The notes under the pieces were generated by a model. That model had not been told where the DNA came from and ran no database searches. It saw nothing but the letters and a program-made list of their open reading frames with translations. Made by a program: the position numbers and the translations under genes. Shown piece by piece: positions 2,842 to 35,827 of a stretch of DNA of 35,888 nucleotides. The first letter of the stretch is position 1, and each line of letters starts with the position of its first letter. Source of the DNA: Octopus bimaculoides (lineage: Eukaryota); assembly GCF_001194135.2 (NCBI RefSeq), contig NC_068983.1, forward strand, positions 35,192,064 to 35,227,951. Direction: 5' to 3'.

Positions 2842-2955
2842 GCTGTGGTGAAAATTGGTATACTTGTAAATACAATAATACATGCTACCCTTACACTGAA
2901 AAATGTGATGGAATAAAAAATTGTCCCAATGGAGAAGATGAAAATGGTTGTGGTA
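2842..2955 (+). CDS. Exon: LDL receptor class A repeat 1
   Basis: [36 protein letters not shown] with six Cys; acceptor ...aaag, donor GTAAGT at 2956; phase 1-1. Confidence 0.9.
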
Positions 2956-5900: not shown

Positions 5901-8900
5901 GTAAATAAATTGCCTCAAATGCTAGGGAGGTTCTTTAGAAGTTATTTATAGTTTCTTTTACCTTATTTAATTATTCTGAAAATATATGAAAAGATGTGTT
6001 ATGGTAGTTTTTGAGAATGTCGAGGTAAAATGATCTGAGTGTAAAAATGCATATGAGAGAAACTTGTGGCAGTATACAGTTAGAAGACAATGTTTGTAGG
6101 GAAATCAAATGCATAAGATGACAACAAATAGCTAACGAATTACCACACGCTCAAAGTGAGTGGTATCTGAGAAAATGGGATAGTCGGGAAGACTTAGAAT
6201 GATGTTGTGAAGCCTGATCGTATGAGGGATATCCATTTTGTATTTGCTAAGTTTTCATCTGATATCTCTTTACTTATTCAATACTCTCTTATCTATTTCA
6301 AATTTTCTTCTTCACTGAACCATGCCACTCTTTTGTTAACGTCTATCACGCTCTTGCCATCTCGACTATTCGTCAAGAGCACTCTCTCTTACTTGTGAAT
6401 ATTTTTCCTTCTCTACTTCTAGGCAACACTATCTCCCTCCAAATCAAACATCAGTGACATCCCTCACACCCTTTCACATGTGACTCTTTTCACAACTTCC
6501 GATTGCTAACATTATGTATATATCTCTGATCAACAAATATAAACTTCAAAAAGCCACTTTCTATGCTCTCATAACTATCTCCATCATTTTACTTTTTTCT
6601 TCCATACTGTCGTCTTAATCACTATTTCCCTTTCATACTCAGCTTCTTTCTCCATTTCACCTCAGTTAATCTCTTTCAAACTCTATCTCTTCTATTAATC
6701 ACGTTGCCAGAAGCGAGCGGAAACAGCGTTAAGCAGCGAAAACTTTATTGTCTTACGGAATACAAGTAATCGTCATCACTACTGTCATCACCAAAAAATA
6801 AACTGAGTGCAACCAAATAAAGCGACTGGTGTTAGAAGGGACCTAGGCGTAAGGAAGCAAGCAAAGAAGGAGACATTTCTGCGAGATATTTCTCCTCCCT
6901 CATTGAAAAGGACAATAAACATTCTGATTTAGATTGTGCAAGCCGTTCAAGCTATGCCAGCCACCATTGAAAGAGAACGTAAAATAATGATGATGGCAAT
7001 GTTGAGGAGGAGGAGGAGGAGGANNNNNNNNNNNNNNNNNNNNNNNNNNNNNNNNNNNNNNNNNNNNNNNNNNNNNNNNNNNNNNNNNNNNNNNNNNNNN
7101 NNNNNNNNNNNNNNNNNNNNNNNNNNNNNNNNNNNNNNNNNNNNNNNNNNNNNNNNNNNNNNNNNNNNNNNNNNNNNNNNNNNNNNNNNNNNNNNNNNNN
7201 NNNNNNNNNNNNNNNNNNNNNNNNNNNNNNNNNNNNNNNNNNNNNNNNNNNNNNNNNNNNNNNNNNNNNNNNNNNNNNNNNNNNNNNNNNNNNNNNNNNN
7301 NNNNNNNNNNNNNNNNNNNNNNNNNNNNNNNNNNNNNNNNNNNNNNNNNNNNNNNNNNNNNNNNNNNNNNNNNNNNNNNNNNNNNNNNNNNNNNNNNNNN
7401 NNNNNNNNNNNNNNNNNNNNNNNNNNNNNNNNNNNNNNNNNNNNNNNNNNNNNNNNNNNNNNNNNNNNNNNNNNNNNNNNNNNNNNNNNNNNNNNNNNNN
7501 NNNNNNNNNNNNNNNNNNNNNNNNNNNNNNNNNNNNNNNNNNNNNNNNNNNNNNNNNNNNNNNNNNNNNNNNNNNNNNNNNNNNNNNNNNNNNNNNNNNN
7601 NNNNNNNNNNNNNNNNNNNNNNNNNNNNNNNNNNNNNNNNNNNNNNNNNNNNNNNNNNNNNNNNNNNNNNNNNNNNNNNNNNNNNNNNNNNNNNNNNNNN
7701 NNNNNNNNNNNNNNNNNNNNNNNNNNNNNNNNNNNNNNNNNNNNNNNNNNNNNNNNNNNNNNNNNNNNNNNNNNNNNNNNNNNNNNNNNNNNNNNNNNNN
7801 NNNNNNNNNNTGGGGAAACTAAAGATAAAACAGTGTACGTAATATTTCAATGAACCACGGAATGTATTAAAATATCATTAATTTAGTTTATTACTCTAAA
7901 GGTCTGTAATCCATTACAAAGTTAAAGAATCAATATTACCAATGTTACAATTGATATTAAGGTGTTGAGTTGGGAGAAATGGTGCTTAATTTCTTACATC
8001 TACATTTTGAGTTAGAATCACACCAGAATCAGCTTTACATGTCTGATTTCCAGTTTTATTAAAAATAGAATCAGTTTGGACTTGAGTCTAACCAAAAGAT
8101 ATCAATCAATATCCTAACAAGCATTTTGGTAAAGAGTCGGCAAAAGTGTCAGCAAATTTAATCAAATAATTAGCAGCATTTACTATCCTTATCATTTCTC
8201 ACTATTCTGAATTTAAATCATGCTAGGATAAACTGTCATTTATATTTCCAGGGTCAATAAGTGTTAGTAAAGTGATCCAACCAACTTTTAACATCACCGT
8301 TACAAAAATGATGTCATTCCTAATAAAAAGTATTCAATGTTTTAATCTGTACTCTGTCTTATTGATATAGGTAACAAACCAAAATATAAATTGACTGGTG
8401 GTCGAGATTTGTGGTCCGGAAAATTGAAAACGCTTAGTGGATCGGAATACTTGACAACATGTGCCTACTCTCTCCCTGAATGGACATTGAACACGATCTG
8501 CTCCAATTTTGGTTTCAAGTAAATAATTTATTAATTTATTACGAGTATTTTTATATTCATTTATTACAAGTATCTATATATTGATTTATTACAATACGTT
8601 TTATATTTAAACTGTTAAAAATAATAGCTGTCTAAAGTAATCTTTTCATTTTCTTTATATTACCACTCCTCTGCAGCACATATAGAATGAGACATGCACG
8701 ATCCAGCTATAAAATTGCAACGGACTGCCACTGAGTGGGTTCTAGTTTTTTTGTGGCGCCTTCTGTAGCATATTCATTGTGCGTCGCCATCTTTATCTGC
8801 TGCTTCAGGCGTTGAGAACTTTTGTACTCGGTGCCCGCTTGTTCCACTGTTGGAATTTTTGCAGATTAGTCATTTTTAGTCTGGGTCCTTGTCCTCGACC

Positions 8901-11900: not shown

Positions 11901-14900
11901 TTGGGAAACGTGAGCTTTGTGAGAAGGTACTGAGTGTTATTGAAGCACGTGTGGCCTTCCATAGCGTACTTCTGGTATCCAGGGCTAAACAACTGTTTCC
12001 AGCACTACAACGTATCCAGCAGCATTAATTCGAGGCTCTATGGAAAGATATAAGCTGACATGGCATTACATTCGTTACTCAGACGACCGTTACTAAAACA
12101 ATCCCAGACGCTGGATGCTTAGTGTGCAACACTATGGGGACATCAAAAGGATCTGCACTTAACCAGTCGTCATTTCTCGTTTTAAAATTTTGGTCCTGGT
12201 CGAAGTCTTCCGTATTAGAGATGAAACAATGTACGCCATGTTCGAAGGGAGTTTTTAACCTCGTTAAGTAACTACCATCTGACAAGGATCAAACTGTATT
12301 CTTGTATCTTTGCAGGCATGAATAGGTCTTTCCTCAGCATTTATGACTTGTAGAGAAAGACCTCTCGAACCACAATTCTGACTTTCTGTGGCGAAATCAA
12401 TTTTCCGGGATCATCATCGACAAAATCTTGAACCTGCAGGACGAATTGTGATGTTCTTATATTGCCAGAATGTTTAGGATTTTTTTACTCTTTGATACAG
12501 TTGAAATATTCCCATCAGCGGCTTCTAATTCCAATCGAACTTGGGGTATAAAAAATCCTCCACATATAAGACAGCTGTCAATTTCTAAGTCGCTGTGTTC
12601 CGTATATATGGCAATGATGCTAGAATATTATTTCATTTCATGTGTGAGAATTTTATCTGCCATAGAGTATCAGAAAAAAATGGAAGCATTTTACTTTTCT
12701 TGGGAGTAATATACTGATAGCTAATTGTCCTCAAATACACCTCGCATTCCGTATAGATACACCTAAAGACACACACGTATACATTGCGGAAACACTCATG
12801 CTGATAGCAATGAAATGTATCTTTTCTATGAAGCAATGCAAAACACTTGCAAGTCATATAGAAACAAGATATAATTATAAAAGTCTCTTTTCAAATAAAA
12901 CCTATACTATATAGAAAGGAAACAAAGGAAATGAAAATAAGGTATTAATCTCTTGACCCCATGTTCACGAATTCGAACTTTATGACAGCAAAACACCAAA
13001 TTCTGTCCCACATTAAGTTACAAAACATAAAAATAAGAATGTTTCATTTCTATTTCTTGGATGTTGAGTATCCATCAGTAAAATATTACTCCAATTGCCA
13101 CCCCGGAACCCCGATGTAAAGTTGCTCTAATGAATAGACTCAATGCATACATAAGTAATGCACACCTTACTTCATTGCTGAGTAATTAGCTGTAAGAAAG
13201 ACATCAGTTAGTAAAACAATTGATCCTGCAAGTAGTCTAACCCACATTAGTGTTAGTGAGCATGAAAAACGGTTGTAAAACGCTATCATAAAATATGAAA
13301 TAGGAAACGAATAATGAAATGTAAATACCACGATTTTGTTTTCTAATTTAAAGCGGAACTTCATATTCGAAAAGGAAAAGCGAATACATTACAGGAGATT
13401 ACATCTACTGCTATTATTATCGATATGGCTCTTTGAATTGTTATAAGAGTTCTTGTGAGCAGTGTCATTGCAATGTGCCTTATGTGTTCTGTTCTAATAC
13501 AAGTAAGTACAGTATTTCTCTTTGCTGGTATAATATGAGAATATAAATGCAATGAACAATTTAACTTGAATCTATAATGCAGTTTACATTCAATATTTTG
13601 TTTTAAGCTACTAATACTTCAGTATAAGCTACTTCAGTACCGGCCTCAGTTGTAGGTTCTGAGAGAAATATGTTGATCTAGAGATGAAAGCGTCAAATCT
13701 CGATGGATGATTCACACGTCATACATTTTCGATATACTGTAGCTTGTTTCCAACGGTCAGGTTAGACTCCTGTAGAGAAGTAGAGATTGAAATAATTGTT
13801 GAGTAAAGGTTTGAAGTGAATTCAGGTACTTCTGCTGTTACCATCAATATATGCAAGATGATGGATCCGAAAGGATGGTAGGTGATAGACTGATAGCTTT
13901 AGAGGAGTTGTGTCAAGCATTTTCACTGTGAAGTTGGCTGCAAATCAGGAAAGCGAAAATAGAACCTGCATCTTCGGGATTACTAATCACGGATCCATCG
14001 TTGTTGTGAAGTGGATGTTAAGATTCTTTAAACTTAGTAGATAACTCTTTGGCAAGGGACCAGAAGAATCGGTTGCAGTCTTTGAGACGAAATAGCTTGA
14101 GAGTTGTGTGATGGATGACGACAGCTTTAGTTGTTCCCACTGTGGTATTGCAAGTGTTGCATTACTGGGTAAATGTCACTGAGTTTTAGAAGGTGAGGGA
14201 ACCTCTTCATGTATTGTTTATACCGTTTGTTTGATTAGTTTTGGGAGAGTTATTTCCAGCTCAAGTATTCTATACCTGATATCGTTCTTTAAATCCTATC
14301 CTCTTAGGCATGTTCTTGGAATCATATACACTATTGCAATACGTTGTCATCTGCTCCAAGCTGAAGACATATTTCTATCTTAGAGAGGATGTAAATACAT
14401 CAGCAGTTCAGATGAAGAAAACCTGTTTAAGCTCTAAATATATAATCGTTAAGTAGCCAGTCATATCAGCTATCATTAATTTCAGCTTCTTACAAGAAAA
14501 TAAGATTACAAGATTATAATAAGGTTTAAACACGTCAAATATTTATTTATTTAAAGAATATTTCATGACAATTTATTTATATTTTCTGTTTTCTATTTCC
14601 GCATCTTCAGCATGTCCACTTGGTAAAGTGAGCTGTCCTTCAAGTCGCAATGAAACCAATTCTACAAATACGTGTATTTTCAAAGAAAGTATATGTGATG
14701 GACAACCTGACTGTGATGATCATAGCGATGAAGAAAATTGTGGTAAGCAAAGAAATTTCCATTTTTTTAATGTAATATTTGATGAAGCATCAAATTTTTA
14801 CTACCTTATATTTCCATAAAATCTTATATCTTCTTTATTAATTTATGAAAATTATTACATTTCAAAATAAAATATAAACAGGAATATTTTACTTCATATG

Positions 14901-17900
14901 TATCAATGCAAGCAACCACTTCCAATTCTACCAATCCAAAAGACTAAATCTTATTGTTTGTTTCTAGAAAGATATTTAGGATTTAAAACAGCTTTTAAAA
15001 TAACATGAGACAGTTTATACTATTTGCAAATAGAAGAAATAGGGAACTGAACTATTTCGTGGAAAGCACTAAGTTTAAGAGGGAAACTGAAATAGCTGGA
15101 TTGACAACAAGAATAAAGTAAACATGATGTCTTACATAACAAAATGGCATTGGAAATAGAAAAAATTCAACTGGAAAATGAAACAAATGATTATAGTTAA
15201 AGTGAGAAACAGCATAAATTCTTCCTCGATTGATTCATCGTCAACAGGTCCATTCGTCGCCTGTATTCAAGTCAGAATCCCACAAGGTCGGTTATTAGAT
15301 GGGATTACATCAAGATGTTGAACCAACATTAAAAAATACAGACGTCCCTCTTTCCCTTGGTATTCGGGTGACGGGTTTAATAAGAATAGGAATAGACTGC
15401 AAACATTTGGGTTTACAAATGCAAACACTTGGGACTGATAAGTTGTATTTGATGATCTGCTTTGTTTCGAAGACAAAAGTTAGAAGTATTACATGAAAAA
15501 AATTAAATGTGTTTTCTGAAATATGAAAATAATTTGTTTTTTTTTTATATATATATATTAATGCTTACAAGAATTATACTGTGCCATAATGAACCAGAGA
15601 GAATATTAAGAGAAAATTCTCAGAGAGATTAACAATCAAAGCAACATTCTTGTAAACTAAAGACTATATTATTTCTCGGTTTGCAAAAGTGTAATATCAA
15701 TTGTGTATGATTTGTGTTAAATTACTTGCTGTATGTTATGTCAAAACGTATGCGTCTTGTTACAAAACTTATGTGTAAGTTTAGGCACCTGTTTATTGAG
15801 TGTATTAACAAGTTAGTTATTAGCTCTCGTTTCAAACTGAAATTTCTTGTTGGTGTACAGTATGAAGGGTTTTCTGAAAACGAGGACTGTGCCCTAGATT
15901 TTTGGTTGTGGTTAACGTTAATATAGCCTTGACATTTGAATACTATTTAAGTACTCACGGAAGGCGAGCTTATCGTACCCTTCTTCGCGCGTCACCATAT
16001 CCCCATATTGCAGCGTGACAATATTACCTCCCACACGCCCAGAGTCACCATGGACTTCCTGCGTCAACACATCAGAACCATGCCCTGGCCGGCTTTCAGC
16101 CCGGATTTGAATCCATTAAAACACCTGTGAGATGAAATCCAGAGACGGTCGAACCAGGTGGTCCCAAGGCCGACAATTCATATGGAACTGGAGGCAGCTT
16201 TCCTCAGTGTGTGGGCGCAGGTGCCAATGGCTTTTGTGAATCGCCTCATACACTCCATGTACCGATGGTGTATGGCCGTATGAACATCCAAGGTGGGCAT
16301 ACACGGTATGAGCATAATCACGCCCTACAATCTCGGTGAACTGGAACCGACCACTAGCAGAACACATGTCAAAGATCTACAGACTATAGTCAAAGTGCAT
16401 CGAAGAAATTGACTTCATCAGATTTATCGAAATTTATCTCTGACATAATGAAATTAAAATATATTTCACAGTCACACACGCTTCGCGTTCCTTTTGCGTT
16501 TCAGTGTATTGTGTCCTGGGGCTCCGACGAACGAATTTTGTGCAAGGAATTGACCAACACCGAACTATCCTAGCCGTTTCCCAAGAAGCATTTAGTGATC
16601 CAGCTGCTTCATTTACCTCTTCAAGCTGTTCGGATTATCATGGTATTTGAAAGAAGGGAAACACGACTTTGAAGTGGAATTTGAATCCATTTTCTCATAT
16701 TGCTACACAGGAAACTTCATTCTTCGTGAAGTAAATCAGCTGAATTGCTAAATACTAAATAAAAATTATAATAGTTTCAAATGCAAATTGAAGCAGTATC
16801 GAGGTTAACAAAACTGCGACGATAATTACGATCACGAAGATAAGACAGAAAATTTTGTATAAAGTTAATTATACCATCTTTAGTATTTGACTAAGACACT
16901 TAGTACGCCTAATGTGGTAGCGAGGAGAAAGACTCTACGCATTTGTTTTCCCTGTTAGAAACATCAGGAAAATCTCTTCAAATTTTTCTTTGCCATCTTA
17001 GTAATACGAAACATTGAATATCTAACCTTAGATATGTCTCAGAACAAATGTTATGGTAAGAGCTTGAAAGTCCTTGATCGTAAATCTGCTGAATCGAGAC
17101 GAAACCGAGACTATACAACAACAATGACAACAACTGCAGCAGCAGCAACAACAACAGCAATAACAATAAAATGTGAAAGGTTACCTTACAAGATTTCATG
17201 TGAGCAATAAGAATAATCTGTTTTATTTGATTTTCTATGTTCAGATAGCTGTACAGACAACCAGTGGCAATGCAGAAATAAGAAGTGCATCGAGAAAGAC
17301 CTTCGCTGCGACGGTAATAAAGACTGTGATGACGGCTCAGATGAATTCCATTGCTGTAAGTAGAAACAACTTGTACGCTTTTTTTTTAATTTTTATATAC
17401 CAACCATTAATAGGGAGATTACATTTAGGGCGGGTCGTAATAGTGACTTCCGATTTTCTCGGTCACCGAACAACACTTCTCTGTCATATTGTGCCAGAGG
17501 AAAGAACTACATGAAGTCGAGATGGTAATAAAGATATTACTACTATGACTATATTTTAAGTCCTGTATGAAGTTTTAGTCGCCACATGGTTAGAATGTTG
17601 CACTCACGATCGCAAGAGCACGACTTCGATTCCGAGCAATGCGTTGTGTTCTTGAATAAAACACTTCATTTCACGATGTTCCGGTTCTCTCAGTGCTATA
17701 ACTGAATAGACATGCGACAGACTGGTGTCTTGTTCAGAGCGGTCGGTGCATTCTTAGATTACATCATTGAAAAAAACTCGCTATCTTCAGGTAAATTTTT
17801 AAAGTTTAGAAATAATACATTTCTAAATCTCTCAGAGAGATTTATGCAGTAGTGATACGATGATGTAGTTGTATGCTGTCAACTTAATGTGACAGTCCCC

Positions 17901-22068: not shown

Positions 22069-23569
22069 ATATAAGAATGATATACGGATATTCTGTTGAA
22101 TGATGCAGCCTAACAAATGGATCAAAATTCAGTTTTAATGAGTTAAATATAACTCCTATTTTGTTTTCCAGTTAAATACGCGGAAAACATGACTGTGCAA
22201 ATGTTTTACAATGGTTCATACAAACCTATTTGTGAAAACAATTTGAAAACCGCAGATGTTGCAAATAAGTTGTGTTCCTATGTTGGAAGAAGGTAAGAAA
22301 ACTGAAGGCACTCTATTTTCTATCTCACTAATTAAAAGAAAACGCTAGATTGTTTTAAAATATATTATTAAGAGTACTGGCCGGTCGCTATTTTCCTGAG
22401 AAAAAAATTAATCCAAGATGTTAAAATGTTATTTTCAACTGAAGATCATAGAGTATGTTTGTCATGCAAAGCGTGAAATCAATAAGTATTGAAATATACA
22501 TTATTTACTGATGTATTCAAAGCAAAGGTAACCCTATTTCTCATATGTTCATTGCATTGCTCGTGTGCGTCTTTATCGTAATTTTTATGGTGATTTTTGG
22601 AGCAATGGTTCTGATTTCAGCAAGTGGTATTATATATCCTACTGTATCTTATATTACTTTATATTGTGCATATATATATATATATATANNNNNNNNNNNN
22701 NNNNNNNNNNNNNNNNNNNNNNNNNNNNNNNNNNNNNNNNNNNNNNNNNNNNNNNNNNNNNNNNNNNNNNNNNNNNNNNNNNNNNNNNNNNNNNNNNNNN
22801 NNNNNNNNNNNNNNNNNNNNNNNNNNNNNNNNNNNNNNNNNNNNNNNNNNNNNNNNNNNNNNNNNNNNNNNNNNNNNNNNNNNNNNNNNNNNNNNNNNNN
22901 NNNNNNNNNNNNNNNNNNNNNNNNNNNNNNNNNNNNNNNNNNNNNNNNNNNNNNNNNNNNNNNNNNNNNNNNNNNNNNNNNNNNNNNNNNNNNNNNNNNN
23001 NNNNNNNNNNNNNNNNNNNNNNNNNNNNNNNNNNNNNNNNNNNNNNNNNNNNNNNNNNNNNNNNNNNNNNNNNNNNNNNNNNNNNNNNNNNNNNNNNNNN
23101 NNNNNNNNNNNNNNNNNNNNNNNNNNNNNNNNNNNNNNNNNNNNNNNNNNNNNNNNNNNNNNNNNNNNNNNNNNNNNNNNNNNNNNNNNNNNNNNNNNNN
23201 NNNNNNNNNNNNNNNNNNNNNNNNNNNNNNNNNNNNNNNNNNNNNNNNNNNNNNNNNNNNNNNNNNNNNNNNNNNNNNNNNNNNNNNNNNNNNNNNNNNN
23301 NNNNNNNNNNNNNNNNNNNNNNNNNNNNNNNNNNNNNNNNNNNNNNNNNNNNNNNNNNNNNNNNNNNNNNNNNNNNNNNNNNNNNNNNNNNNNNNNNNNN
23401 NNNNNNNNNNNNNNNNNNNNNNNNNNNNNNNNNNNNNNNNNNNNNNNNNNNNNNNNNNNNNNNNNNNNNNNNNNNNNNNNNNNNNNNNNNNNNNNNNNNN
23501 NNNNNNNNNNNNNNNNNNNNNNNNNNNNNNNNNNNNNNNNNNNNNNNNNNNNNNNNNNNNNNNNNNNNN

Positions 23570-26741: not shown

Positions 26742-29700
26742 TGATAGCTTCGGTAGTTTGGAGAGTAGAAGCTGGTGTGTATGGGCGACTACTAGTCTTC
26801 CACAAACAACCTTGTCCAGACCTTTGCCTAAGAGCGAACATTTTAGGTGCAATCCCATAGTCATTCGTGACCGATGAGCGTCTTAATATATGCATGCGAA
26901 TGTATATACAGGTTGTTGTCCATCTCCATTTTTTTACCCATGATGGAGACGAACACGAATGCTTGTAGAACATAAGTACCACTTTATGAGCGACTGTGAT
27001 TAGTACCTATTGGCAGGAGCCGAGGTGAGATGACAAGTAATCACATGAGGCATTTTTTTCTTCTTAGCAATGGAACATTTAATGGTTCAATTTCTGGTAA
27101 GGGTATAGTATTCAGACACAAGTATTCAGGCAACGATGACCAACTGATTCCAGGTTTCGAACCCGAATCTATTAGGTAAATATTATACACTTTTTCATGT
27201 TATTATGCTTTTATGTCATGTTATGGTCTGTTATGTGATAGGATGCCTGGTTTTCCATTGTGACAAAGTGAAATACTAATGGTTTGGAATGTATTCTGAT
27301 CTATTGTTTTGACTCACTGAATGTTTATTTTTGACAATGTCTGTCACACTAAATGCGGATGTCTAACTTTGGTACAAAGCTTTATAATTCGAAGATGATG
27401 TATATTCAGTTATACTGATTCAAGTATCTTCCTGTTACTGATGTTACTGATGACAGAAATGTAAAAAAATATATATATATATATTCAACAGGTCTTGAAT
27501 GCAGATTGGGAAAGGGTTTAAGTAAATACCTCAAAGCATTTTCCAGTACTTGTACAAAAGTTACCAATCATTTGGTCTTCCTGCTACATTAAATAATTTG
27601 TATTTATTCCCCGTTTGAGAGAGGACGGAAATCAGTTCAAGTAGAGCCACTGAATAAATTGTAACTCATTACTATTAGTAGATTGGTATTCATTTCCACT
27701 GGTTTATAAAGCAATCATGAGTTATGTATTAATTACTTCTGCTGCTTGTAGCACTGTACTTTATTTATGCATAATATACACAATATAGAAAATCTCTCCG
27801 GCAACAAAATGCATTCTGAGAGCTGGAACTTCATAATATGCGGCAAAAGATAGATAAAAGTCTCCTAAATGAAATTTCAGAGTATCATAGGTATTATTCT
27901 CACTTACCTATTCTTGACTTAGTTCTGTTTTAGTGATATATTCTGAGTACCTATTATCTAGCAGTTATATGCATTACAAATAACCTATAGCAGATTTGAT
28001 CTTATAATCTACGCGCAGATAATTCAGTATCTTAGCTAAATGGCTGTTTTGTTTCTACAAAACACTCGGCCTATTTCAAGTAAGGTAAACTAAAGCAATC
28101 GCAGATTCATTTATGTTTGTGTGTATTTTAAAATGATTGTAAGAAATTTGAGAATAGGTCATATTAGCACTACTAACAGAGTCAAAACACAACGAATGCC
28201 GTTAACTAGTCAAGAGAATTACCAATTTTACAGTACTAGCACTGATTGCAAAACTGAGCAATTCTACCTCAGGTCGATTGTATTATCGACAGGAAAGCAT
28301 CTTGGCTATTGACCGTGCAGTTCTATTGAAAAGAAACAACCGCTGACCTTCAGTTTTTAATTCAATAGCCTATTGAGTGAGATTAACATGATTCTCATCC
28401 TGGCTAAAAAGTGTTAAGCATTGACTCAACTTCGCCATGTTTTATTGACTATGAATCATAATCCTTCTTCCTTGTTGTTCGATTTGCCATCGACTTGGCA
28501 GGCTACTGCTCTCTTATAATGATACGTAGTGACATTATACTGATAAGATTGTAACAATAATAAATGCATTAATAAAATTTCTGCTCTTTTCTAACAGCGA
28601 ATGCAACATCGCGAAGCTAAATTGTGGTGAACAACGTAAGCTGAATTTCATTAAATCTAATTTTATTTAATGGGTATAAGGCCTAACATTTATAGAAAGG
28701 GTGAAGAAAGATATTCATATCTTTCTTCGAGGAAATTGTCCTGTTAACCCAAATTCTTTCGAGAAACACAAGCAAAAAAAATTCATAAAAACTTATATGA
28801 TGTGTAAAAATGAGATCCTTTGAATGAGAAATATGAGAAAAGAAAATAGTCCTAAATGTAGATGTGGAAAGAAGGATGGTGACTTTTATAATGTACGTGT
28901 ACACGTCGGATGTAAAATAGTGTTACCCAAATAAATATTGGGATGTTGTATCTAAAATAACCTACCACAGAATTATTATGCTCACACAGAACGCATTCCG
29001 TACTACTCGAATGTAGGTACGATATTAAATCAAAACACGTCGCACGACCAACAATGTCAAATACTCTGACAGTTCACACAATTCTCATTTATTCAGATCC
29101 GTTAGTCCACTTTCACTCACGTGGCGTGTGTCCAGGATCCTTCCACATGTGACAAAGCATTTTTATAGACAATTAGTGAGTAGGTAATTTGAATGAGGAC
29201 GATCTAGGCTAGAAATCATAGCTAGCAATTTGCAGACATACATTCGTAACAAGTGTGGCAGCGGAGAATAGGCAGGTGATCGATATTACCAGGTGATAGG
29301 TTAGCAGTAAATTATTCTGGATGTTATGTTTGAGAGTGTGACATAATCCATAGATGGTACACCGAATGATTTAAGAAATGGAATTGTCAAATGAATTTAA
29401 AGATTAAGTATGTAATTATATTTAGGCTACATATCTATTTAGTCTCCTTTGTCATAATGACTGTGTCTAAAAGTCAATTAAAATTCAATTTTCCTGCAAA
29501 GAAATTGGTGAAAGAGAAAAATTCTCGATCAGCTTTTAAAATAATCGATCTAATAATTCGTGTAAATTTCTAATGCTTTAGAATTCTTCAATTTACTTCA
29601 AATAGGTATTAATAGTTGTTAAAACTTGTTTCTTAAAACACATTTACAATTACCGTCCTTTGTGGAAAAAAAAAACTTGAAACATTTTGTTTTACATTAT

Positions 29701-32467
29701 TTCTTTGTTTATTTAACTATTCTTCATAATCTCAGAATGTGGAACTCGAATGATGGGCTCTATTGAATCCAGTGCAATGAGCAATAGTGGACAATTCGCT
29801 TTGGATGGAGAATGGCCCTGGTCTGTGTCAGTTCATGGGAATTACTATTTTTCAAAACCTGCTGTAATAATCGACAAACACCATGTCCTTACCCCTGCTG
29901 CTTATTTAAAGTAAGTATTTTCAATGTTTTGATAACATTATCTCCTGTCTGTATACGTTTATAATAGATATTCGCGCGGCCTTGTCTTGCTACTTTAATC
30001 CCATCAACTACGAACTATTATTCATCTTTTAACTTAACAATACAAGATCAATAGATTGACTGGTAAAAATTGTCTTGTCAAAATGTTTTATTTTGCTGCA
30101 GCTTTGCCTTCTGATTTCATATCCTACTTAGATCACCTTTACTTTTCAACCATCTGTGTTCTCTAAAATATAGCTCCTTTCAAGTACTGAGGTCAATATA
30201 ATCGACTGCTTTTCCAAATTTCTGGTCTTGTATTTACATTAGAATTTATCTAAATGAGTAGCACACAACACTCCTGCAGCATCTTCTTCATACGCTGCTT
30301 ACAGAATATAATAGTCTTTTGGAATTGCTCTACACCTAATACATACACACACATGCACACACATAAACACACACACGCAAACACACATGCAACACACAAA
30401 CACACACATACATATACCGCATGTGGCGGTGTTTATGCATCCGTATCTACTAATGGTTAAATCTAATACATTTGTTACTCTATCGTGTATTTGTTTCTTT
30501 TTGTATTTGTATCTAATATTTGCTATGGATCTTCTATAAGAGCGGAGCTGTATATCTTCAGTTGCCATTTACAAATACAAAGACCGAGAAAATATCACTT
30601 TAACGAGACACCTCTTGAAATCACCTGAGGAGACACATCTTCACCGATCAATACATCTAAACAAGATGGTCAGTATCCCACCCGCGAGAGATCAATACTA
30701 GGTGGGTCGAAACAATTTTAGTTATCAATAAAGATTCTCATATCTTCCATCTTCCGTCTCTCATTAATCAAATACCCAACGAACACAGAATTTATTTGGA
30801 GTTAGGATACATGTCTATTATTATGCTGATTAAAGCATATCCGCCGTTTGGTTTACATGATAATATCCACACTTACGGTATAGTTTTCACTAGATCTACG
30901 TCAGGAATTTCGAAGCATCGGGATTGTTTATAATCGATGAAGGAAACGGGAAAATGGATTTGGTACGCATCATTATTTAACGCGACAATCATTTCGACCC
31001 ACCCTGCAGCTGTCACTTAAGGGTAGGATGTTGTGCATCTAGTTGTGTTGCATCAACCAATGCAGTGTGTATCGCTTCAGATGTTTGATATAAAAAGATA
31101 TCCTACTATATATATTGATTTCCTTCAGGAATGTTGTACTCTCGTAGTATGCGTGTGGGACTGACGGAGAGTAGAATAATTCTGGGGTTACAACCAACAA
31201 ATGTGTTTGGCTATATAACATAAATTGAAATTTAAAAAATATATAAAACATATAAGATATTTTAATGTATGTTACGTACCCAGACCTATTTGCTGATTAT
31301 AACCCCAGAATTATTCTACGAGAGAGTATATCACGCCTGGAGGAACTCAACATCCGTAGTACGATATCCTTTTATATCAAACGCCTGAAGTGACACTGAA
31401 TGCACTGCTTGATGTAACACAACTAGATGCACAGTAGCTTACCCTTAATAGACAGCTGCAGAACGGGTCAAAACGATCGTTGCGTTGAAAAAGGATTGAA
31501 GGGACAGTAAGTTTAGAAGAAGAAAGGTGAGTAAAACAATGAGAATTGAGAGAAAACTTCAGGTGTCAGACGAAGTCATATGATGATATCCTGTATATTA
31601 GAAACATTCACTCCATCTAGCATGGAAAACCGATGATAATGATTATGGTGATGATAATGATGATAATGATGATGATTAACAAAATCTTTCTTTCTCATAG
31701 AGCAAGGTTACCTAAGAATTTACATATAAAAACTGGATCGACTTGGCAACGTAGTGGAGATGAATACTATGTGGATAAAATCTGGATACCAAAAGAATAT
31801 TCACCGTGGAACATAGATTATAATTTTGCAATTCTTCACGTGAAGAACGAAATTAAGATGTCACGTTCTGTACAGCCAATTTGTTTACCAGAACGCTCTA
31901 TGCCCAGTAATACGAAATGTTTTGCTGTTGGATTCGGTATGACAAAATATGTTTTCAACTAAAAATATTTAAGAATGTTATTGCATAAATGGTTTGTCTG
32001 ATTTATATAGTTATTTCTGTATGTCTGTAGATTTATATATAATTATTCATTTGTGACACCGCGTACGTATGCTACTACACACATAAACATATACATGAAT
32101 GCATACATATATACATCCAAATATACACATAACACCTCCACACCAAGACATGTGTATTACCTCCCACACACAGCCCCTCGTTCCCGATCACCGTTTGTTA
32201 TCTCCCCCTTTCTTAGCTCTCCTGAAAAAAGAATTTCTAACTTCCGGTCAGCCATTGTTATGATCGGCCATTATTATGATTGACCGTTGACTGAACACTA
32301 TTCAATTTTTTTCTCCGTGTTTTTCTCCTTGTCTCCGTATTCTTTCTGTTGAAGAGCGTAGCTCGAAACGTCAAAGACTTTCCGTATTCCCGAGCGTCAT
32401 ACTAATATATCCTTTTGTTATTTACACCACCTGTCCTCGTCTGTTGTTATTATTTGTATAGTCTCCC

Positions 32468-32517
<50 letters not shown>

Positions 32518-34059
32518 TATCCTACTAACACTATCCAGAATACTACCACGACTTCCACCACAGTTACAGATAGAATAATTAACAACAACGATAGCAATAA
32601 TAACGATAATAGTAATAATAATGTTAATAACCTAAACCTTTCTACCCCCAACTCTAACTTCTCCTCTGACAGTAATACCGCTTCCATTCCTGAAAATAAT
32701 CCCCAAAATACACCCTCTTATAACTGCCGTTTTATTGTAGAAGATCTAATGTAATTTATAAATGCACCGAAGCAGTGCAGCGGTGCAACAGTGCAGGAGG
32801 CAGCTGAAACGATCGTTGTGCGAAATAAAGCTTCCTGTTATACTCCATCTTCGTATCAATCATTTAGTATGAATATATAATATACTATCTGATATATTAT
32901 ATAATGTAAAGGCGCTGAGCTGGAAGAGTCGTTAGTACGCCCGGCAGAATTCTTAGCCTCATTTCGTCTGTCCTTTGTTATGAATTCAAATTCCATCGAG
33001 AAATACGTTACTTTTCATCCCTTCAGAATCCCTATGTCCCTCTTCCGATATTGCTGGACTTGAGTCAAAAATTTGAAATCAACATAATAAACTATGTACA
33101 TAAATTATAAAGATTTAGTACCTAAACGTTCTATTTCCATTGTTAATGTACCTTTACATGCACAAATATAAGCTAACAATGAGAACAAACTGATAATTAT
33201 ATTCCAAGTTTTTGTTTCAAATAATTAGATTAATGGAATTTAAAATATCATTATACATTCCTGCTGTATTAATTGTTTTGTTTTCTAATTTTCTTTAATT
33301 TTAAAATTAGGAGGTATATCAAAACGCTTAGAAGAAATAAAGGTTGAAAAAACAGAATCTTCATTCTGCAAGAAGAATTTTCCATTACATGAAAACGCTA
33401 CATTCTGTGCCAACGATAAACACGACGATCCACCACACTGTTCTGTAAGTTATTTTCTGTTCATTTACTCAGTTTGTATTAGAAAATTCAATCATTTCTA
33501 AAAACTTTGTCCTGTTGTTAAAATTTACAAGTGTTATTGTTTAGCAGATAAATAAAAAATAAACAATGTGCTCGGATGCATTCATGCAGCGAACATATCG
33601 TCATTTTGTAAGCTTTCATATATCCGGGTCTATATTATTCTAAATCTCTCTTATTTGCATTTGGTAAACGAAATTAGGTTACTATTTCTTGTAAAATAAG
33701 CAATGGCTTATAGATCCTTTCATAAGCTTCAAGGGAAGAGAAATAGCAGGTATGAAGCATGTTTTAAATGTTGGTATATTGCAGGAAAATGGAAAATGAA
33801 TGCAACTTATCTATGGTGAATGAAGCGGAATAAGCTGAATTTGATATTGTCAATATATCATATTTTACTTGCAACGTTTAACTGAGAAAAAACATACTGT
33901 TTTCTGCAAAATAGGGGTAGTTTATCCTGTTCAAGCTATATTATTAGCATTATCATGCGATTGAGAATTTAAAATCACTTCTTTAACTTTCTAAGACATC
34001 TCAACGCCTCTAAAAGCGAACTTCGTTTGTTTATTTACGTTTGTCGTAATTTGAATTTA

Positions 34060-34097
<38 letters not shown>

Positions 34098-34702
34098 ATT
34101 AATTTTCAAGCAGGCCATTTGAAATCTATAGTCCATCAGGTTTTAATTTCTTTTTACATTTGCAAATCTATCCCTATCTCTATTATTGTACATTAGCTGT
34201 AGGAATTTGCAATTCAAAATAGATTTTGAACATTAATAAGAATGAAATTAATAAAGATATGAGGGAACATTAGCTATAAATACTACAGATTCAATTATGA
34301 ATCATTTTACATTTTCTATCATTACTGAATTAAGAATTGAAGGTACACTGCCGTTGACATTTACGGTTTTCTCATTTTAGGGAAAAAGATTTCGCTTTTA
34401 TATTTACTGATAATTGTGTTTGAATATTGATTTTGTGACAATTATCTGATATTTTTCTATTAGACTTCTAATAACGTGTTACATACATAATAAAATTCCA
34501 AAATATTTCAGTAATATCTGAATATTCTTTCATTTTATTTTTATAGTTTGATGAAGGAAGTTATGTAACATGCCCCAATGAACATGGCAAGTGGACGGTA
34601 TATGGTTTGGGTTTAGAAACTTCATGTTATAATCACGATTTACGTCCTTCACTATTTATTGACGTATATAAGATAAAAGATTGGATTGAAGAGAAAATAT
34701 AA
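2842..34702 (+). CDS. Multi-exon gene, 5'-incomplete: LDLa-SRCR-LDLa-LDLa-SRCR-trypsin-like serine protease homolog (predicted catalytically inactive)
   Basis: Twelve exons with AG/GT ends chain without stops (entry/exit phases 1-1, 1-2, 2-1, 1-1, 1-1, 1-2, 2-2, 2-1, 1-2, 2-1, 1-0, 0-stop). They total 1622 nt and end at TAA 34700-34702. About 10 N-glycosylation sequons indicate an extracellular protein. Confidence 0.85.
3515..3662 (+). mobile_element. tRNA-derived SINE copy
   Basis: B-box-like tttcaaattcc followed by gtcgactttgcctt...cgataaattaagtacc. Related copies occur at 3664-3844 (-) and 32911-33030 (+). Confidence 0.7.
3664..3844 (-). mobile_element. tRNA-derived SINE copy, inverted relative to the adjacent copy
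   Basis: The reverse complement has the head gcggactggaagaatcgttggcataccg...gttctaactccgcc and a body aligning to the 3515-3662 copy. Confidence 0.7.
4300..5800 (+). mobile_element. Decayed RTE-clade LINE (AP endonuclease and RT remnants)
   Basis: Frameshifted translations include [32 protein letters not shown] and WELLYADDL (RT YADD motif). Confidence 0.75.
6200..6620 (-). mobile_element. Possible second LINE remnant (RT C-terminal part)
   Basis: Weak minus-strand similarity only (e.g. [15 protein letters not shown], resembling the RTE thumb region). Confidence 0.3.
8371..8518 (+). CDS. Exon: SRCR domain 1, N-terminal half
   Basis: [48 protein letters not shown] fits the SRCR RLxGG..GR..C..C..LG pattern; acceptor tag, donor GTAAAT; phase 1-2. 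Confidence 0.8.
8850..12440 (+). mobile_element. Near-full-length decayed RTE/BovB-like LINE
   Basis: APE motifs [25 protein letters not shown] and [12 protein letters not shown] motifs [27 protein letters not shown] and ELQYADD. Many stops and frameshifts. The ends are approximate. Confidence 0.9.
13354..13502 (+). CDS. Exon: SRCR domain 1, C-terminal half (Tyr/Cys-rich)
   Basis: [49 protein letters not shown]; polypyrimidine acceptor and GTAAGT donor. Phase 2-1 exactly bridges the flanking exons. Confidence 0.8.
14611..14742 (+). CDS. Exon: LDLa repeat 2
   Basis: [43 protein letters not shown]; cag acceptor, GTAAGC donor; phase 1-1. Confidence 0.9.
15960..16508 (+). mobile_element. Tc1-family transposon 3' remnant with right TIR and TA
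   Basis: Translation [46 protein letters not shown]. The end reads ...gcgtttCAGTG-TA (16502-16508). Confidence 0.85.
17245..17355 (+). CDS. Exon: LDLa repeat 3
   Basis: [36 protein letters not shown]; cag acceptor, GTAAGT donor; phase 1-1. Confidence 0.92.
17578..17745 (+). mobile_element. tRNA-derived SINE (decayed)
   Basis: A-box-like tggttagaatg and B-box-like ttcgattcc, followed by a gttgtgttcttgaataaaacactt body. Confidence 0.55.
17866..18140. mobile_element. Fold-back MITE-like element with about 127-bp near-perfect inverted arms
   Basis: Arm 17866-17992 is the reverse complement of 18014-18140, around a 21-nt loop. There are only 2 mismatches in the central 118 bp. Confidence 0.85.
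18820..19030. repeat. Degenerate (CA)n-rich low-complexity tract
   Basis: Direct reading of the sequence. Confidence 0.8.
19165..19320 (+). mobile_element. SINE 3' portion with RTE-like tail
   Basis: Ends ...cctagcatggccgcagtc...gaaacaagttaaaaataaaagat, a tail I recall from octopus SINEs. Recognised from memory. Confidence 0.45.
19369..19378 (+). other. Illumina adapter remnant AGATCGGAAG at a contig end
   Basis: Exact 10-nt match to the start of the TruSeq adapter, immediately before the N gap at 19379. Confidence 0.7.
19535..20550 (-). mobile_element. Penelope-like element 3' part (linker, GIY-YIG, pseudo-LTR)
   Basis: Minus translation [15 protein letters not shown]...[14 protein letters not shown]...[27 protein letters not shown] degenerate hammerhead follows and the end abuts (TA)n. 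Confidence 0.85.
19692..19730 (-). ncRNA. Degenerate minimal hammerhead motif (core mutated to UUGAAAA)
   Basis: Minus strand: GAGAAAU-uugaaaa-G(aaaaua)C-GAAA-CCGG-UU-AUUUCUC. Stem I is a perfect 7 bp and stem III is palindromic. Confidence 0.45.
20551..20810 (+). mobile_element. Penelope-like RT N-terminal fragment in inverted orientation
   Basis: Translation [11 protein letters not shown]...(frameshift)...[19 protein letters not shown], typical PLE RT N-terminal motifs. Confidence 0.8.
20815..21006 (+). mobile_element. PLE pseudo-LTR-like terminus containing a minimal hammerhead, ending at (TA)n
   Basis: Same layout as 32290-32467 (ttctg..gaagagc...gctcgaaa.gt.aaa...gagcgtc...ctaata). Confidence 0.6.
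20871..20905 (+). ncRNA. Minimal type I hammerhead motif
   Basis: GUUU-CUGACGA-A-GAGC(UUU)GCUC-GAAA-UG-U-A-AAAC. The core is intact with an extra A9.1; stem I and stem II are 4 bp each. Confidence 0.6.
21169..21560. repeat. (TA)n/(TATG)n/(CA)n microsatellite complex
   Basis: Direct reading of the sequence. Confidence 0.85.
22172..22292 (+). CDS. Exon: SRCR domain 2 (short type found in type II transmembrane serine proteases), N-terminal part
   Basis: [39 protein letters not shown]; strong tttccag acceptor, GTAAGA donor; phase 1-2. Confidence 0.8.
23570..23620. repeat. (GA)n microsatellite after gap 22689-23569
   Basis: Direct reading of the sequence. Confidence 0.95.
23794..24495 (+). mobile_element. 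Tc1/mariner superfamily (maT/DD37D-like) transposon 5' remnant
   Basis: Frameshifted transposase: [27 protein letters not shown]...[16 protein letters not shown]...[13 protein letters not shown]-like start (TA)tagggtgcgatagg lies at about 23794. It is truncated after the first catalytic Asp region. Confidence 0.75.
25327..25570 (+). mobile_element. Penelope-like GIY-YIG endonuclease remnant
   Basis: [27 protein letters not shown]...[11 protein letters not shown]...GLSLH...EELIF, matching the CxxC..YIG.TGRRL..R..EH..HF pattern. Confidence 0.7.
25660..26265. repeat. CA-rich low-complexity tract and (TA)n/(TACA)n microsatellites
   Basis: Direct reading of the sequence. Confidence 0.8.
26745..26885 (+). 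mobile_element. SINE-like 3' fragment
   Basis: aaacaaccttgtccagacctttgcctaagag...ggtgcaatcccatagtcattcgtgaccg resembles a repeat tail I recall from octopus. Not searched. Confidence 0.35.
27068..27175 (+). CDS. Exon: SRCR domain 2, middle part
   Basis: [35 protein letters not shown]; ttcttcttag acceptor, GTAAAT donor; phase 2-2. Confidence 0.7.
28598..28635 (+). CDS. Exon: end of SRCR domain 2 (38 nt)
   Basis: [12 protein letters not shown] resembles the C..G..V.L.C end of the short SRCR; ctaacag acceptor, GTAAGC donor; phase 2-1. Confidence 0.7.
29736..29910 (+). CDS. Exon: activation region and N-terminus of trypsin-like domain (IVGG and His57 motifs degenerate)
   Basis: CGTR...[43 protein letters not shown]; GEWPW is a hallmark of S1A peptidases; GTAAGT donor; phase 1-2. 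Confidence 0.88.
30620..30725 (+). ncRNA. Hammerhead-like motif with long branched stem II, partly decayed
   Basis: AUCAC-CUGAGGA-GAC...GUC-GAAA-CAAUU(u)U-A-GUUAU. Stem I has 4 of 5 bp and there are two internal hairpins. Confidence 0.4.
30977..31489. mobile_element. Long-TIR fold-back MITE-like element (about 230-250 bp imperfect arms)
   Basis: 30977-31226 is complementary to 31264-31489 (e.g. ctgcagctgtc/gacagctgcag, tgcatctagttgtg/cacaactagatgca, gtagaataattctgggg/ccccagaattattctac), around an AT-rich spacer. Confidence 0.8.
31701..31936 (+). CDS. Exon: trypsin-like domain, middle (Asp102 replaced by Asn)
   Basis: [12 protein letters not shown]...[10 protein letters not shown]...VQPICLP...KCFAVGF. 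The donor is taken as GTATGA at 31937, the only phase-1 GT near the expected site, so the 3' end is less certain. Confidence 0.85.
32290..32467 (+). mobile_element. PLE pseudo-LTR-like terminus with hammerhead variant, ending at (TA)n(TG)n
   Basis: Homologous layout to 20815-21006 and directly followed by (TA)n at 32468. Confidence 0.6.
32341..32377 (+). ncRNA. Minimal hammerhead variant with CUGUUGA core
   Basis: UCUUU-CUGUUGA-A-GAGC(GUA)GCUC-GAAA-CG-U-C-AAAGA. Stem I is 5 bp, stem III is the palindrome ACGU, the triplet is GUC, and A6 is changed to U. Confidence 0.6.
32911..33030 (+). mobile_element. tRNA-derived SINE 5' part, same family as the 3515-3844 copies
   Basis: Head ggcgctgagctggaagagtcgttagtacgcccggc...gaattcaaattcc. 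Confidence 0.6.
33311..33444 (+). CDS. Exon: trypsin-like domain (C168, C182, C191)
   Basis: [44 protein letters not shown]; GTAAGT donor; phase 1-0. Confidence 0.85.
34547..34702 (+). CDS. Terminal coding exon: trypsin-like C-terminus (GDSGG replaced by FDEGS)
   Basis: [51 protein letters not shown]; strong ttttatag acceptor; phase 0. Confidence 0.9.
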   Translation, partial: FDEGSYVTCPNEHGKWTVYGLGLETSCYNHDLRPSLFIDVYKIKDWIEEKI

Positions 34703-34949: not shown

Positions 34950-34955
34950 AATAAA
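34950..34955 (+). promoter_or_regulatory. Candidate polyadenylation signal AATAAA
   Basis: First AATAAA about 250 nt after the stop. Alternatives are ATTAAA at 34790 and AATAAA at 35376. Confidence 0.35.
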
Positions 34956-35784
34956 AAGATTAATTTTCCAGAAATATTCCCTGTCAAATGATTCATACCA
35001 ACTGAAAGAGTTATGCTTATTAATTAATTTTAGACGAAATCCCACTTATCAGTTTAATGTGTATTTAATGACAGATTATAAACCTTCCTAGAATCTGCGG
35101 TGACCTATAAGTGGTGAGATTATGCGATTGTAGCTACATCAGGCTACAAAAGCAATTAGATTTTGAAGTTGTAATCGTTCTTTTACTATGTTATTTCTTT
35201 TCAACTTGAGGTTTCATTTTTACTTATATTTCATTTATTCGCAAGTTGCATGATACTCTACATCGTCCTTAACATTTTTATACATTAAAGTCTCTATGTA
35301 TTATTGCCAATGACCAATTTTTTTAATGATTTTTAAATAAGTTTTATAATGCGTTTATAATTATCAATGATCTTCAATAAAACTTTTATCAGTGTGAAAT
35401 TATTTTGTATTTTCTATTTTGAAAAATACAATCTACACAAGGTACTATAGTTCTCGTGTTTACAGAATGTAAAGAAAGAGTGAGAGAGAGAGTGGGGGAG
35501 AATAAGCGTGTGAGAAACTAAATATAAAAGGACGCAAATGTAGTATGGAAGAAATAAGAATACTGAAAGAAGTACGTAATAAATAGGAAAAGTGGATGGA
35601 TGGTCTGGTGACACAGGATGAGATGGTAAAAACTGATCTCCGGAAGCCTTACTCGGAAAATGACAAAATGTGTAACGTGATTGATGCATTTTGATGATGC
35701 AGGTGGCGCAAGCATGACAACAGGAAGATAAAGAAAATTGAAGGCTTCGAAATGTGTGCGTGAATACCTTATATATGTGAGAAT

Positions 35785-35827
35785 GTATGTGTGTATGTAT
35801 ATATATATACATATATATACACACCCA

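Follow-up and report, generated by a model that had tools for sequence, protein, structure and literature searches.

Loss of catalysis from S1A (chymotrypsin/trypsin-type) domains is common; the resulting pseudoproteases often act in immunity, adhesion and signalling, and a dead catalytic triad alone is an ordinary finding. In the vertebrate S1A pseudoproteases HGF/MSP, haptoglobin, azurocidin (heparin-binding protein) and protein Z the fold is kept while the triad is replaced, and what was the cleft/activation region now serves to bind ligands; azurocidin has antimicrobial activity. The non-catalytic S1A serine protease homologues (SPHs) of arthropods, which include SPCLIP1 and CLIPA8 of Anopheles and the masquerade-like proteins, contribute to immunity as cofactors and through recruitment to microbial surfaces and adhesion/opsonisation, and non-catalytic homologues are essential in protease cascades (PMC6901238, PMC3764210). 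Such pseudoproteases are very frequent among invertebrates and have been studied in detail in arthropods: in Tenebrio, only 137 of 269 serine peptidases have a conserved triad (PMC11172050). Here we describe a gene of Octopus bimaculoides that ends in a domain of this kind. It lies in a stretch of 35,888 nucleotides (the window) of CM046603.1, at ca. 35.19–35.23 Mb, which is AT-rich and contains assembly gaps and introns. Our results support the view that the gene encodes a large secreted mosaic protein whose C-terminal dead S1A domain has been kept for its fold and is not a pseudogene.

The octopus protein resembles the arthropod SPHs in having a secreted S1A domain that lacks the catalytic serine. 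It differs from the clip-domain SPHs in that Pfam scans found no clip domain, in the absence of an activating cleavage site and in its N-terminal architecture. The octopus pseudoprotease has an independent origin in a lophotrochozoan family, and its likeness to arthropod SPHs is functional only. The vertebrate pseudoproteases named above differ from it in their N-terminal kringle, CCP or Gla-EGF modules, and most of them evolve slowly and have defined ligands. Large secreted, multi-module, Cys-rich mucus proteins that bind microbes are of a similar type; they are without MAM, LDLa (LDL-receptor class A) and S1 domains and are not homologous to the octopus protein as a whole. A literature search for serine protease homologues of cephalopods found nothing specific.

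The domain is encoded by four plus-strand exons, T1–T4, which lie exactly where a preliminary description of this DNA had placed them (Table 1). Each has a polypyrimidine tract and an AG acceptor; the donors of T1–T3 are GTAAG or GTATG, and T4 terminates at a stop codon (TAA, 34700–34702). The first two bases of T1 finish a codon begun in the preceding exon H, and the spliced product has 232 amino acids (232 open codons) with no internal stops. The domain keeps the S1A chymotrypsin/trypsin fold. It matches the whole of the Pfam Trypsin model PF00089 (E = 4.5e-19, model positions 3–220 of 220), and its sequence matches in the PDB are the catalytic domains of factor XIa, enteropeptidase, TMPRSS13, TMPRSS2 and trypsins, with E values down to 1.5e-13. 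An AlphaFold2 model of the domain, built from 32 sequences, has a mean pLDDT (predicted local distance difference test) of 83.8 and a pTM (predicted template modelling score) of 0.86, and its comparison by Foldseek with factor XIa, chymotrypsinogen, enteropeptidase and the matriptase zymogen gave TM scores of 0.80–0.86.

Residue positions, in chymotrypsin numbering, were read from an alignment of the domain with 11 family members. The sequence LTAAHC is replaced by LTPAAY (His57 to Ala, Cys58 to Tyr), DIGLL/DIALL by NFAIL (Asp102 to Asn) and GDSGGP by FDEGSY, which changes Gly193 of the oxyanion hole to Phe and Ser195 (34553–34555) to Glu. IVGG is replaced by SNSG (Ile16 to Ser), and Met-SNSG stands where Arg-IVGG is expected. 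The four residues required of an active peptidase, His57, Asp102, Ser195 and Gly193, are thus Ala, Asn, Glu and Phe; likewise, zymogen activation by cleavage before Ile/Val16 and formation of an Ile16–Asp194 salt bridge finds no basis here, the junction being Met-SNSG and Asp194 being variable in orthologs. Across the orthologs and a paralog of the gene, position 57 is Ala or Ser, position 102 is Asn or deleted, position 195 is Glu or Gly, and position 194 is Asp, Leu or Tyr. Since the triad and Gly193 are replaced, with residues that differ among orthologs, we file the domain as a non-peptidase homologue rather than a peptidase; judging by these residues, it is most probably catalytically inactive.

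The replacements at positions 57, 102, 193 and 195 had been proposed in the preliminary description; they are borne out by the alignment with the 11 relatives, and the Pfam, PDB and family alignments agree on them. Eight cysteines are present, at positions 1, 122, 136, 168, 182, 191, 201 and 220, while C42 and C58 are both absent. The positions 1/122, 136/201, 168/182 and 191/220 are kept in three species and would, by homology, form the disulfides C1–C122, C136–C201, C168–C182 and C191–C220. The cysteines at these positions, the preserved splice sites and the absence of stops are all as had been reported. Other details need correction. The replaced Asp189 of the S1 pocket had been read as a sign of inactivation, but Pro189 is common to catalytically intact paralogs and is a family trait. 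The absence of an R-IVGG activation site is confirmed; it is, however, family-wide and as such no sign of inactivation, and only the change of Ile16 to Ser is specific to the dead clade described below. Asp194, thought to be kept, is Leu in the orthologs of O. sinensis and O. vulgaris and Tyr in the paralog. Finally, C42 and C58 were said to have been lost as a pair, which holds for O. bimaculoides but not for O. sinensis and O. vulgaris, where C58 is lost and C42 is retained.

The dead clade consists of the window gene, its O. sinensis and O. vulgaris orthologs and an O. bimaculoides paralog, LOC106877509. Its derived features are the changes of Gly193 to Phe, Trp141 to Phe and Ile16 to Ser, a shorter autolysis loop and a shorter 217–219 segment. 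Since these features are common to the clade, inactivation is older than the split of these Octopus species. Catalytically intact paralogs of the same architecture were found in O. bimaculoides (P0006/P0198, P0016) and in O. sinensis and O. vulgaris (P0203, P0012). The intact relatives are 31–38% identical to the dead S1 domain and have in common with it the C-terminal order LDLa, SRCR, LDLa, LDLa, SRCR-like stem and S1, as well as Pro189 and a non-Arg junction: neither Arg nor Lys precedes Ile16 in EPN-IRYG, EPS-IRHG or the oyster ENM-IING (compare window positions 29768–29791). They differ from the dead clade in keeping His57, Asp102, Ser195 and the C42–C58 disulfide. Relative to them, the autolysis loop of the dead clade is five residues shorter, its 217–219 segment is two residues shorter, and there is an N-terminal insertion of two residues.

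A profile built from four dead-clade sequences retrieved only P0001 and P0003, and a word-indexed homolog search with the domain alone returned one protein only. P0001 (XP_052822096.1) is the product of LOC106877509, which lies outside the window. Its first 25 residues are identical to the T1 product, after which identity falls to ca. 60–70%, and this mosaic pattern hints at gene conversion or recent duplication. The LOC106877509 gene model spans 222 kb on the opposite strand, overlapping the window gene, and is probably mis-modelled. As an outgroup the paralog is ambiguous, being 71% identical to the window gene and 62% to the O. sinensis ortholog, and it may be a lineage-specific duplicate. 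Two Logan contigs, intron-less and transcript-like, encode further dead relatives, P0034 (LSSAQC, GDEGGP) and P0037 (SRR27666071, L004; LTHPKC, VDDGGP), in which His57 is changed to Gln or Lys and Ser195 to Glu or Asp. Since P0034 and P0037 carry different replacements, their sequences suggest that catalysis was lost repeatedly in this cephalopod family.

We compared the gene with its counterpart in O. sinensis, where two loci (L001 and L002; CM016861.1, 147.98–148.06 Mb) are colinear with the window. Since colinearity includes the introns, we consider the two loci orthologous to the window gene. The O. sinensis annotation splits the ortholog into XP_036357360.1, with MAM and LDLa domains, and XP_036357361.1, a 122-aa “chymotrypsin-like elastase family member 3B”; exons T1, T2, G and H are present and open between the split models and are included in neither. 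In all ten orthologous exons compared, splice sites and frame are intact, and the only exon indels are in-frame ones of 3, 6 and 21 nt, the last being a deletion in O. sinensis that takes out the Asp102 region. Frameshifts in orthologs, which the preliminary description would have taken as a sign of a pseudogene, are thus absent from these O. sinensis exons. Introns, in turn, diverge by 8.9% over 14,342 aligned bases and have 7.2 indel events per kb, 68% of which are not multiples of three.

The cysteines are conserved without exception: 30 of 30 in the exons compared with O. sinensis and, in a comparison of the annotated protein with O. vulgaris, 39 of 39. In a neutral simulation, with substitutions placed at random at either the observed number or the number expected from the intron rate, 6–10 cysteines were lost, the probability that all cysteines were kept was at most 0.0014 and that of no stop at most 0.005; for the trypsin domain alone, the joint probability was 0.0002–0.015. 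The pattern is not one of neutral decay.

The domain evolves rapidly all the same. At the amino-acid level, the domain is 70% identical in O. bimaculoides and O. sinensis and the upstream modules are 79% identical; the corresponding values of dN/dS (omega), estimated by the NG86, LWL85, YN00 and maximum-likelihood methods, are 1.1–1.5 and 0.7–1.1. Four-fold sites in unchanged codons diverge by 7.8%, close to the 8.9% of introns, while codon positions 1 and 2 together diverge by 18.2% in the domain (p = 5e-10) and by 13.7% upstream (p = 5e-4). Replacement sites thus change at about twice the local neutral (intron/four-fold) rate. Replacements form clusters along the domain (permutation p = 0.0006) that are separated by unchanged stretches of 17 and 13 residues, and the clusters end sharply at splice sites, where the adjoining intron bases are identical.

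The loops at positions 34–41, 57–64, 93–102, 143–151, 169–176, 185–195 and 215–225, which ring the substrate cleft in active S1A enzymes, were set in advance by chymotrypsin numbering. As can be seen from the comparison, 56% of cleft-loop residues are changed versus 24% elsewhere (odds ratio 4.0, p = 1.7e-5). No enrichment of replacements was found in DSSP coil versus strand and helix (p = 0.4), so the enrichment is solely in the cleft loops so defined. Between O. vulgaris and O. sinensis the domain is 94% identical (14 of 225 residues differ). Within O. vulgaris, one transcript departs from the genome model at six residues, which hints at high polymorphism. A candidate hypervariable site is domain residue 138 in the autolysis loop (after GFG, at the 31936/33311 junction), which is Gly in O. 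bimaculoides, Arg in O. sinensis, His in the O. vulgaris genome and Asp in the O. vulgaris transcript. The most economical reading of these data is a strongly constrained disulfide scaffold combined with diversifying selection on surface loops.

In order to be read correctly, dN/dS has to be set beside these results. The preliminary description had proposed that a value near 1 would indicate a pseudogene, and numerically the domain's omega of 1.1–1.5 agrees with that rule. The rule misleads here, because an omega near 1 averages invariant scaffold sites with sites that change faster than neutral ones.

Evidence for a product comes from O. vulgaris. In a tandem mass tag (TMT) proteome of its skin mucus, three entries that correspond to the ortholog are high-confidence master proteins (PMC11431876, Supplementary Data S1, S2). 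These are the genome model OctVul6B006693P1 (= A0AA36ASZ9; 13% coverage, 17 peptides), a 1274-aa open reading frame (ORF) of an assembled transcript (22% coverage, 20 peptides) and a 283-aa transcript ORF (27% coverage, 6 peptides) (PMC11431876). The 283-aa ORF is exactly the stem plus the dead domain, spliced like exons F-G-H-T1-T4, which confirms this part of the predicted splice chain by transcript, in the ortholog rather than in O. bimaculoides. The peptide [R].QSSGDEYDVDK.[I], rated High and Unambiguous (PMC11431876), corresponds to residues 1554–1564 of the O. vulgaris genome model and lies inside the dead domain, in the equivalent of exon T2. From the mucus proteome transcripts and the T2 peptide, it follows that the O. 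vulgaris ortholog gives rise to a transcript with the predicted splicing and to a protein that is secreted with the dead domain still attached. The accessions of the ortholog are absent from the supplements of a 2023 mucus paper (PMC10138644).

We therefore see the earlier proposal that the gene is no pseudogene as well founded: in O. sinensis frame and splice sites are intact, the cysteines are kept, and the O. vulgaris product is found in mucus. Likewise, the fold, the constraint and the expression of the ortholog support the proposal of selection for the fold without catalysis in a non-enzymatic mosaic protein.

The mosaic itself was reconstructed from the upstream exons, which were located by tblastn with the C-terminal 540 residues of three relatives (P0006, P0012, P0011) and then delimited by AG/GT sites and phase agreement. 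The relatives, retrieved by an exhaustive profile search, are very large octopod MAM/LDLa/SRCR/trypsin proteins. Eight more exons, A–H, were found in the window upstream of T1, all with agreeing phases and in the order LDLa, SRCR, LDLa, LDLa, SRCR-like (Table 1). The 12-exon chain of A–H and T1–T4 has 539 codons, no stop and canonical splice sites, and its translation is 100% identical to the O. bimaculoides protein XP_014781924.1 (P0151; A0A0L8GDT2), annotated as “atrial natriuretic peptide-converting enzyme”. That the domain belongs to a mosaic protein, as had been suggested earlier, is confirmed by this identity and by the multi-module ortholog of O. vulgaris. Since the first residue of XP_014781924.1 is an internal Met within the tail of a MAM domain, and open LDLa and MAM exons lie further upstream, before window position 1 (L003, 4799–4912 and 9932–10159, matching O. 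vulgaris residues 989–1026 and 1097–1172), the model is 5′-truncated. The O. vulgaris ortholog, CAI9720287.1 (A0AA36ASZ9, P0215), has 1705 amino acids with SRCR, six MAM and LDLa modules and the dead trypsin domain; its N-terminus reads as hydrophobic and signal-peptide-like. The family layout of MAM repeats, LDLa, SRCR, LDLa, LDLa, SRCR-like stem and S1 was recovered by tblastn, from the upstream exons and by Pfam scans of P0215, P0006 and P0037. An oyster protein, P0152, can be aligned with 100% of the 539-aa query; its listed domains are MAM, LDLa, SRCR and Trypsin, and the module order was read from sequence.

This layout is enteropeptidase-like and expanded in octopods. Enteropeptidase, corin and the TMPRSS-type proteases likewise have a MAM/LDLa/SRCR mosaic followed by a C-terminal S1 domain tethered via Cys1–Cys122; the enteropeptidase/TMPRSS type gives the best PDB matches in sequence and structure and is the source of the database names (best match, TMPS2_MOUSE). 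Pfam scans of the O. vulgaris ortholog and two relatives found no frizzled, SEA or CUB domain at E ≤ 0.001, and the octopus protein differs from the corin type in this respect as well as in having no Arg/Lys-Ile site, a dead triad and an ortholog in mucus. We rejected an identity with corin, an active protease with a type II membrane anchor, two frizzled domains, LDLa repeats and SRCR, on the grounds of the missing frizzled domain (E ≤ 0.001), the presence of MAM instead, the dead triad and the occurrence of the ortholog in secreted mucus. The enzyme names given to the gene and its orthologs (corin-like, elastase 3B-like, TMPRSS2-like) are almost certainly wrong.

Table 1. Exons and other features of the pseudoprotease gene in the window (positions are those of the window)
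Feature	Position	Strand	Content and evidence
Exon A	2842..2955	+	LDLa (LDL-receptor class A) module 1; phase 1-1; tblastn, splice sites, identity to P0151
Exon B	8371..8518	+	SRCR-like module, first part; tblastn; orthologous exon in O. sinensis L002
Exon C	13354..13502	+	SRCR-like module, second Cys-rich part; tblastn, splice/phase; O. sinensis
Exon D	14611..14742	+	LDLa module 2; tblastn, splice/phase; O. sinensis
Exon E	17245..17355	+	LDLa module 3; tblastn, splice/phase; matches O. vulgaris P0215
Exon F	22172..22292	+	Juxta-protease SRCR-like stem, start; tblastn, splice/phase; O. vulgaris comparison
Exon G	27068..27175	+	Stem continuation; tblastn, splice/phase; O. sinensis ortholog
Exon H	28598..28635	+	38-nt exon, gives first base of codon split with T1; tblastn, phase; O. 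sinensis
Exon T1	29736..29910	+	C1, SNSG for IVGG, GEWPW, LTPAAYL for LTAAHC
His57 position	29900..29902	+	Ala; adjoining codon (Cys58 position) is Tyr; family alignment
Exon T2	31701..31936	+	NFAIL for DIALL (Asp102 to Asn), C122, C136, GFG for GWG
Asp102 position	31822..31824	+	Asn; family alignment
Exon T3	33311..33444	+	Shortened autolysis loop, C168, C182, Pro189, C191
Exon T4	34547..34702	+	FDEGSY for GDSGGP, C201, C220, C-terminal helix, TAA stop
Positions 193–195	34547..34555	+	Phe-Asp-Glu for Gly-Asp-Ser; family alignment
Polyadenylation signal	34950..34955	+	AATAAA, 248 nt 3′ of stop

Several other elements were observed in the introns. The T1–T2 intron contains a foldback element with inverted arms of 175 nt (30969–31143 / 31322–31496, 78% complementary) and a nested inner pair of 61 nt (31171–31231 / 31259–31319); the element is also present in the O. 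sinensis intron and aligns there in reverse as well. A Pfam scan of intronic ORFs named only two fragments, both of them remnants of transposons. One is from a reverse transcriptase (RVT_1; 11005–11271, plus strand, E = 2.8e-7), and the block around it can be aligned with O. sinensis as well; the other, a weak match to the DDE_3 transposase family (15951–16127, plus strand, E = 0.0012), is below the Pfam cut-off. A 158-aa ORF on the minus strand (2030–2503), in the intron directly upstream of exon A, has no Pfam match and looks repeat-derived. Microsatellites with dinucleotide units, (CA)n and (TA)n/(TG)n, are present at 30340–30400, 32470–32520, 34060–34090 and 35764–35888 (introns and window end), and they give rise to long, spurious ORFs with many His, Thr, Cys and Val codons. 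Between the two species, ca. 4.1 kb of O. bimaculoides sequence (window 4203–8333, including an N gap at 7024–7810) has no O. sinensis counterpart, and the O. sinensis T2–T3 intron has ca. 15 kb of extra sequence (L001, 10577–25994).

As to function, we favor, at slightly better than even confidence, the reading that the protein is a secreted mucus scaffold or recognition protein in which the dead domain is a fast-evolving binding module. In such a protein, consisting of a signal peptide, SRCR, several MAM and LDLa modules, SRCR, two LDLa, an SRCR-like stem and the pseudoprotease, the MAM modules would oligomerise and calcium-dependent ligand binding would fall to the LDLa and SRCR modules, making the whole an extracellular mucus scaffold or recognition factor. 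The dead domain would stay uncleaved, as a zymogen-like, disulfide-locked barrel, and its former active-site loops would be a binding surface under diversifying selection; it may thus bind where its relatives cut. Microbial or parasite molecules would be likely targets, as would protease inhibitors or substrates of the active paralogs. Non-catalytic binding via the remodelled cleft loops is, we infer, the most likely mechanism. A stronger version, which we entertain tentatively and consider unlikely as it stands, is that of a hypervariable immune recognition module of skin mucus, whose cleft loops are diversified by positive selection, possibly with exchange between paralogs, to follow changing microbial or parasite targets or their protease inhibitors.

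Several observations weigh against the scaffold/recognition reading. The expression evidence comes from the O. vulgaris ortholog and not from O. bimaculoides itself, whose protein had no Logan transcript contig in its cluster. The bootstrap interval of omega for the domain is 0.88–2.6 and thus not significantly above 1; the upstream modules are also fast, and, since the difference in omega between them and the domain is not significant (permutation p = 0.10), we do not claim a domain-specific acceleration. Of 79 changed codons, 26 carry at least two changes, and the excess over the intron rate rests in part on these multi-change clusters, which could have been produced by a few complex mutations or short conversion tracts from paralogs. 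Cleft loops are, moreover, the most variable part of any S1A protease. Finally, selection against stops and unpaired cysteines might only keep the rest of the protein secretable.

The last point leads to the main rival, a passenger or vestigial domain without a ligand of its own in a protein whose functional part is the MAM/LDLa/SRCR array, which we regard as possible, though on balance doubtful. Such a domain would survive only since premature stops in non-terminal exons would lead to mRNA decay and misfolding or unpaired cysteines would block secretion of the protein as a whole, and its speed would reflect lost constraint plus complex mutations. An omega not significantly above 1 is what one would expect of it, as are the many codons with multiple changes, the 21-nt deletion of the Asp102 region in O. 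sinensis and the differences between orthologs at positions 57, 102, 194 and 195, which look like drift. However, lost constraint can raise the rate only to the neutral one, whereas replacement positions change at ca. twice the intron/four-fold rate, and ca. 56% of cleft-loop residues are changed versus a neutral expectation that we estimate at ca. 19%. The invariant blocks of 17 and 13 residues persist, and since before the three species and the paralog separated, the domain has kept its reading frame in all of them. Another possibility, that the domain regulates the active paralogs as a cofactor, a competitive trap for substrates or a decoy for inhibitors, in the manner of the arthropod clip-domain homologs, is suggested by the intact paralogs of the same architecture in the same species, by “Serine protease 1” and several MAM/LDLa proteins that are also in the O. 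vulgaris mucus proteome (PMC11431876) and by the precedent of non-catalytic homologs as essential cascade components (PMC6901238, PMC3764210). We think it improbable: the protein has neither a clip domain nor a site for activating cleavage, no observation points to an interaction, and the fast divergence of the cleft loops is unlike a surface that fits a conserved endogenous partner.

Two further explanations would do without a maintained, inactive domain. Decay of a pseudogene, with relic exons in O. bimaculoides whose frame is open by chance, appears very unlikely. Although omega is ca. 1, the annotated model is 5′-truncated and no direct O. bimaculoides transcript was found in the data reached, there are twelve in-phase exons with canonical splice sites and no stop, and frame and splice sites of the O. 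sinensis ortholog are intact. Moreover, all cysteines are conserved, with a joint neutral probability of <0.001, the upstream MAM and LDLa exons are present and open, and the ortholog was detected as a protein. None of the hallmarks of a pseudogene, be it frame disruption, loss of splice sites, neutrally evolving structural residues or absence of a product, was encountered. That the domain is still an enzyme, by means of a non-canonical nucleophile or a realigned triad, is harder still to believe. Glu at position 195, Asp194 in O. bimaculoides and two His ca. seven residues N-terminal of the position-57 slot could be invoked in its favor; however, the Pfam, PDB and family alignments concur on the replacements, Gly193 is Phe and Ile16 is Ser, and no catalytic site would tolerate the variability seen among orthologs at positions 57, 102, 194 and 195. 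Residual catalysis is therefore unlikely.

The octopus gene is thus a further S1A pseudoprotease mislabelled as an enzyme in databases, and a dN/dS near 1 should not be read as “pseudogene” unless scaffold residues, frame and introns have been checked. The protein is found at the outer surface of the animal, and studies of octopus health and aquaculture already use mucus “MAM and LDL-receptor” proteins as markers. An invariant cysteine scaffold combined with replacement at ca. twice the neutral rate, concentrated around the former substrate cleft, is typical of arms races of the host–microbe type. If the reading as a hypervariable recognition module is true, a pseudoenzyme would be used in a mollusc like the scaffold of a variable immune receptor, and the protein would offer a concrete candidate, open to testing, for a variable recognition molecule of cephalopods, in which immune recognition is little understood.

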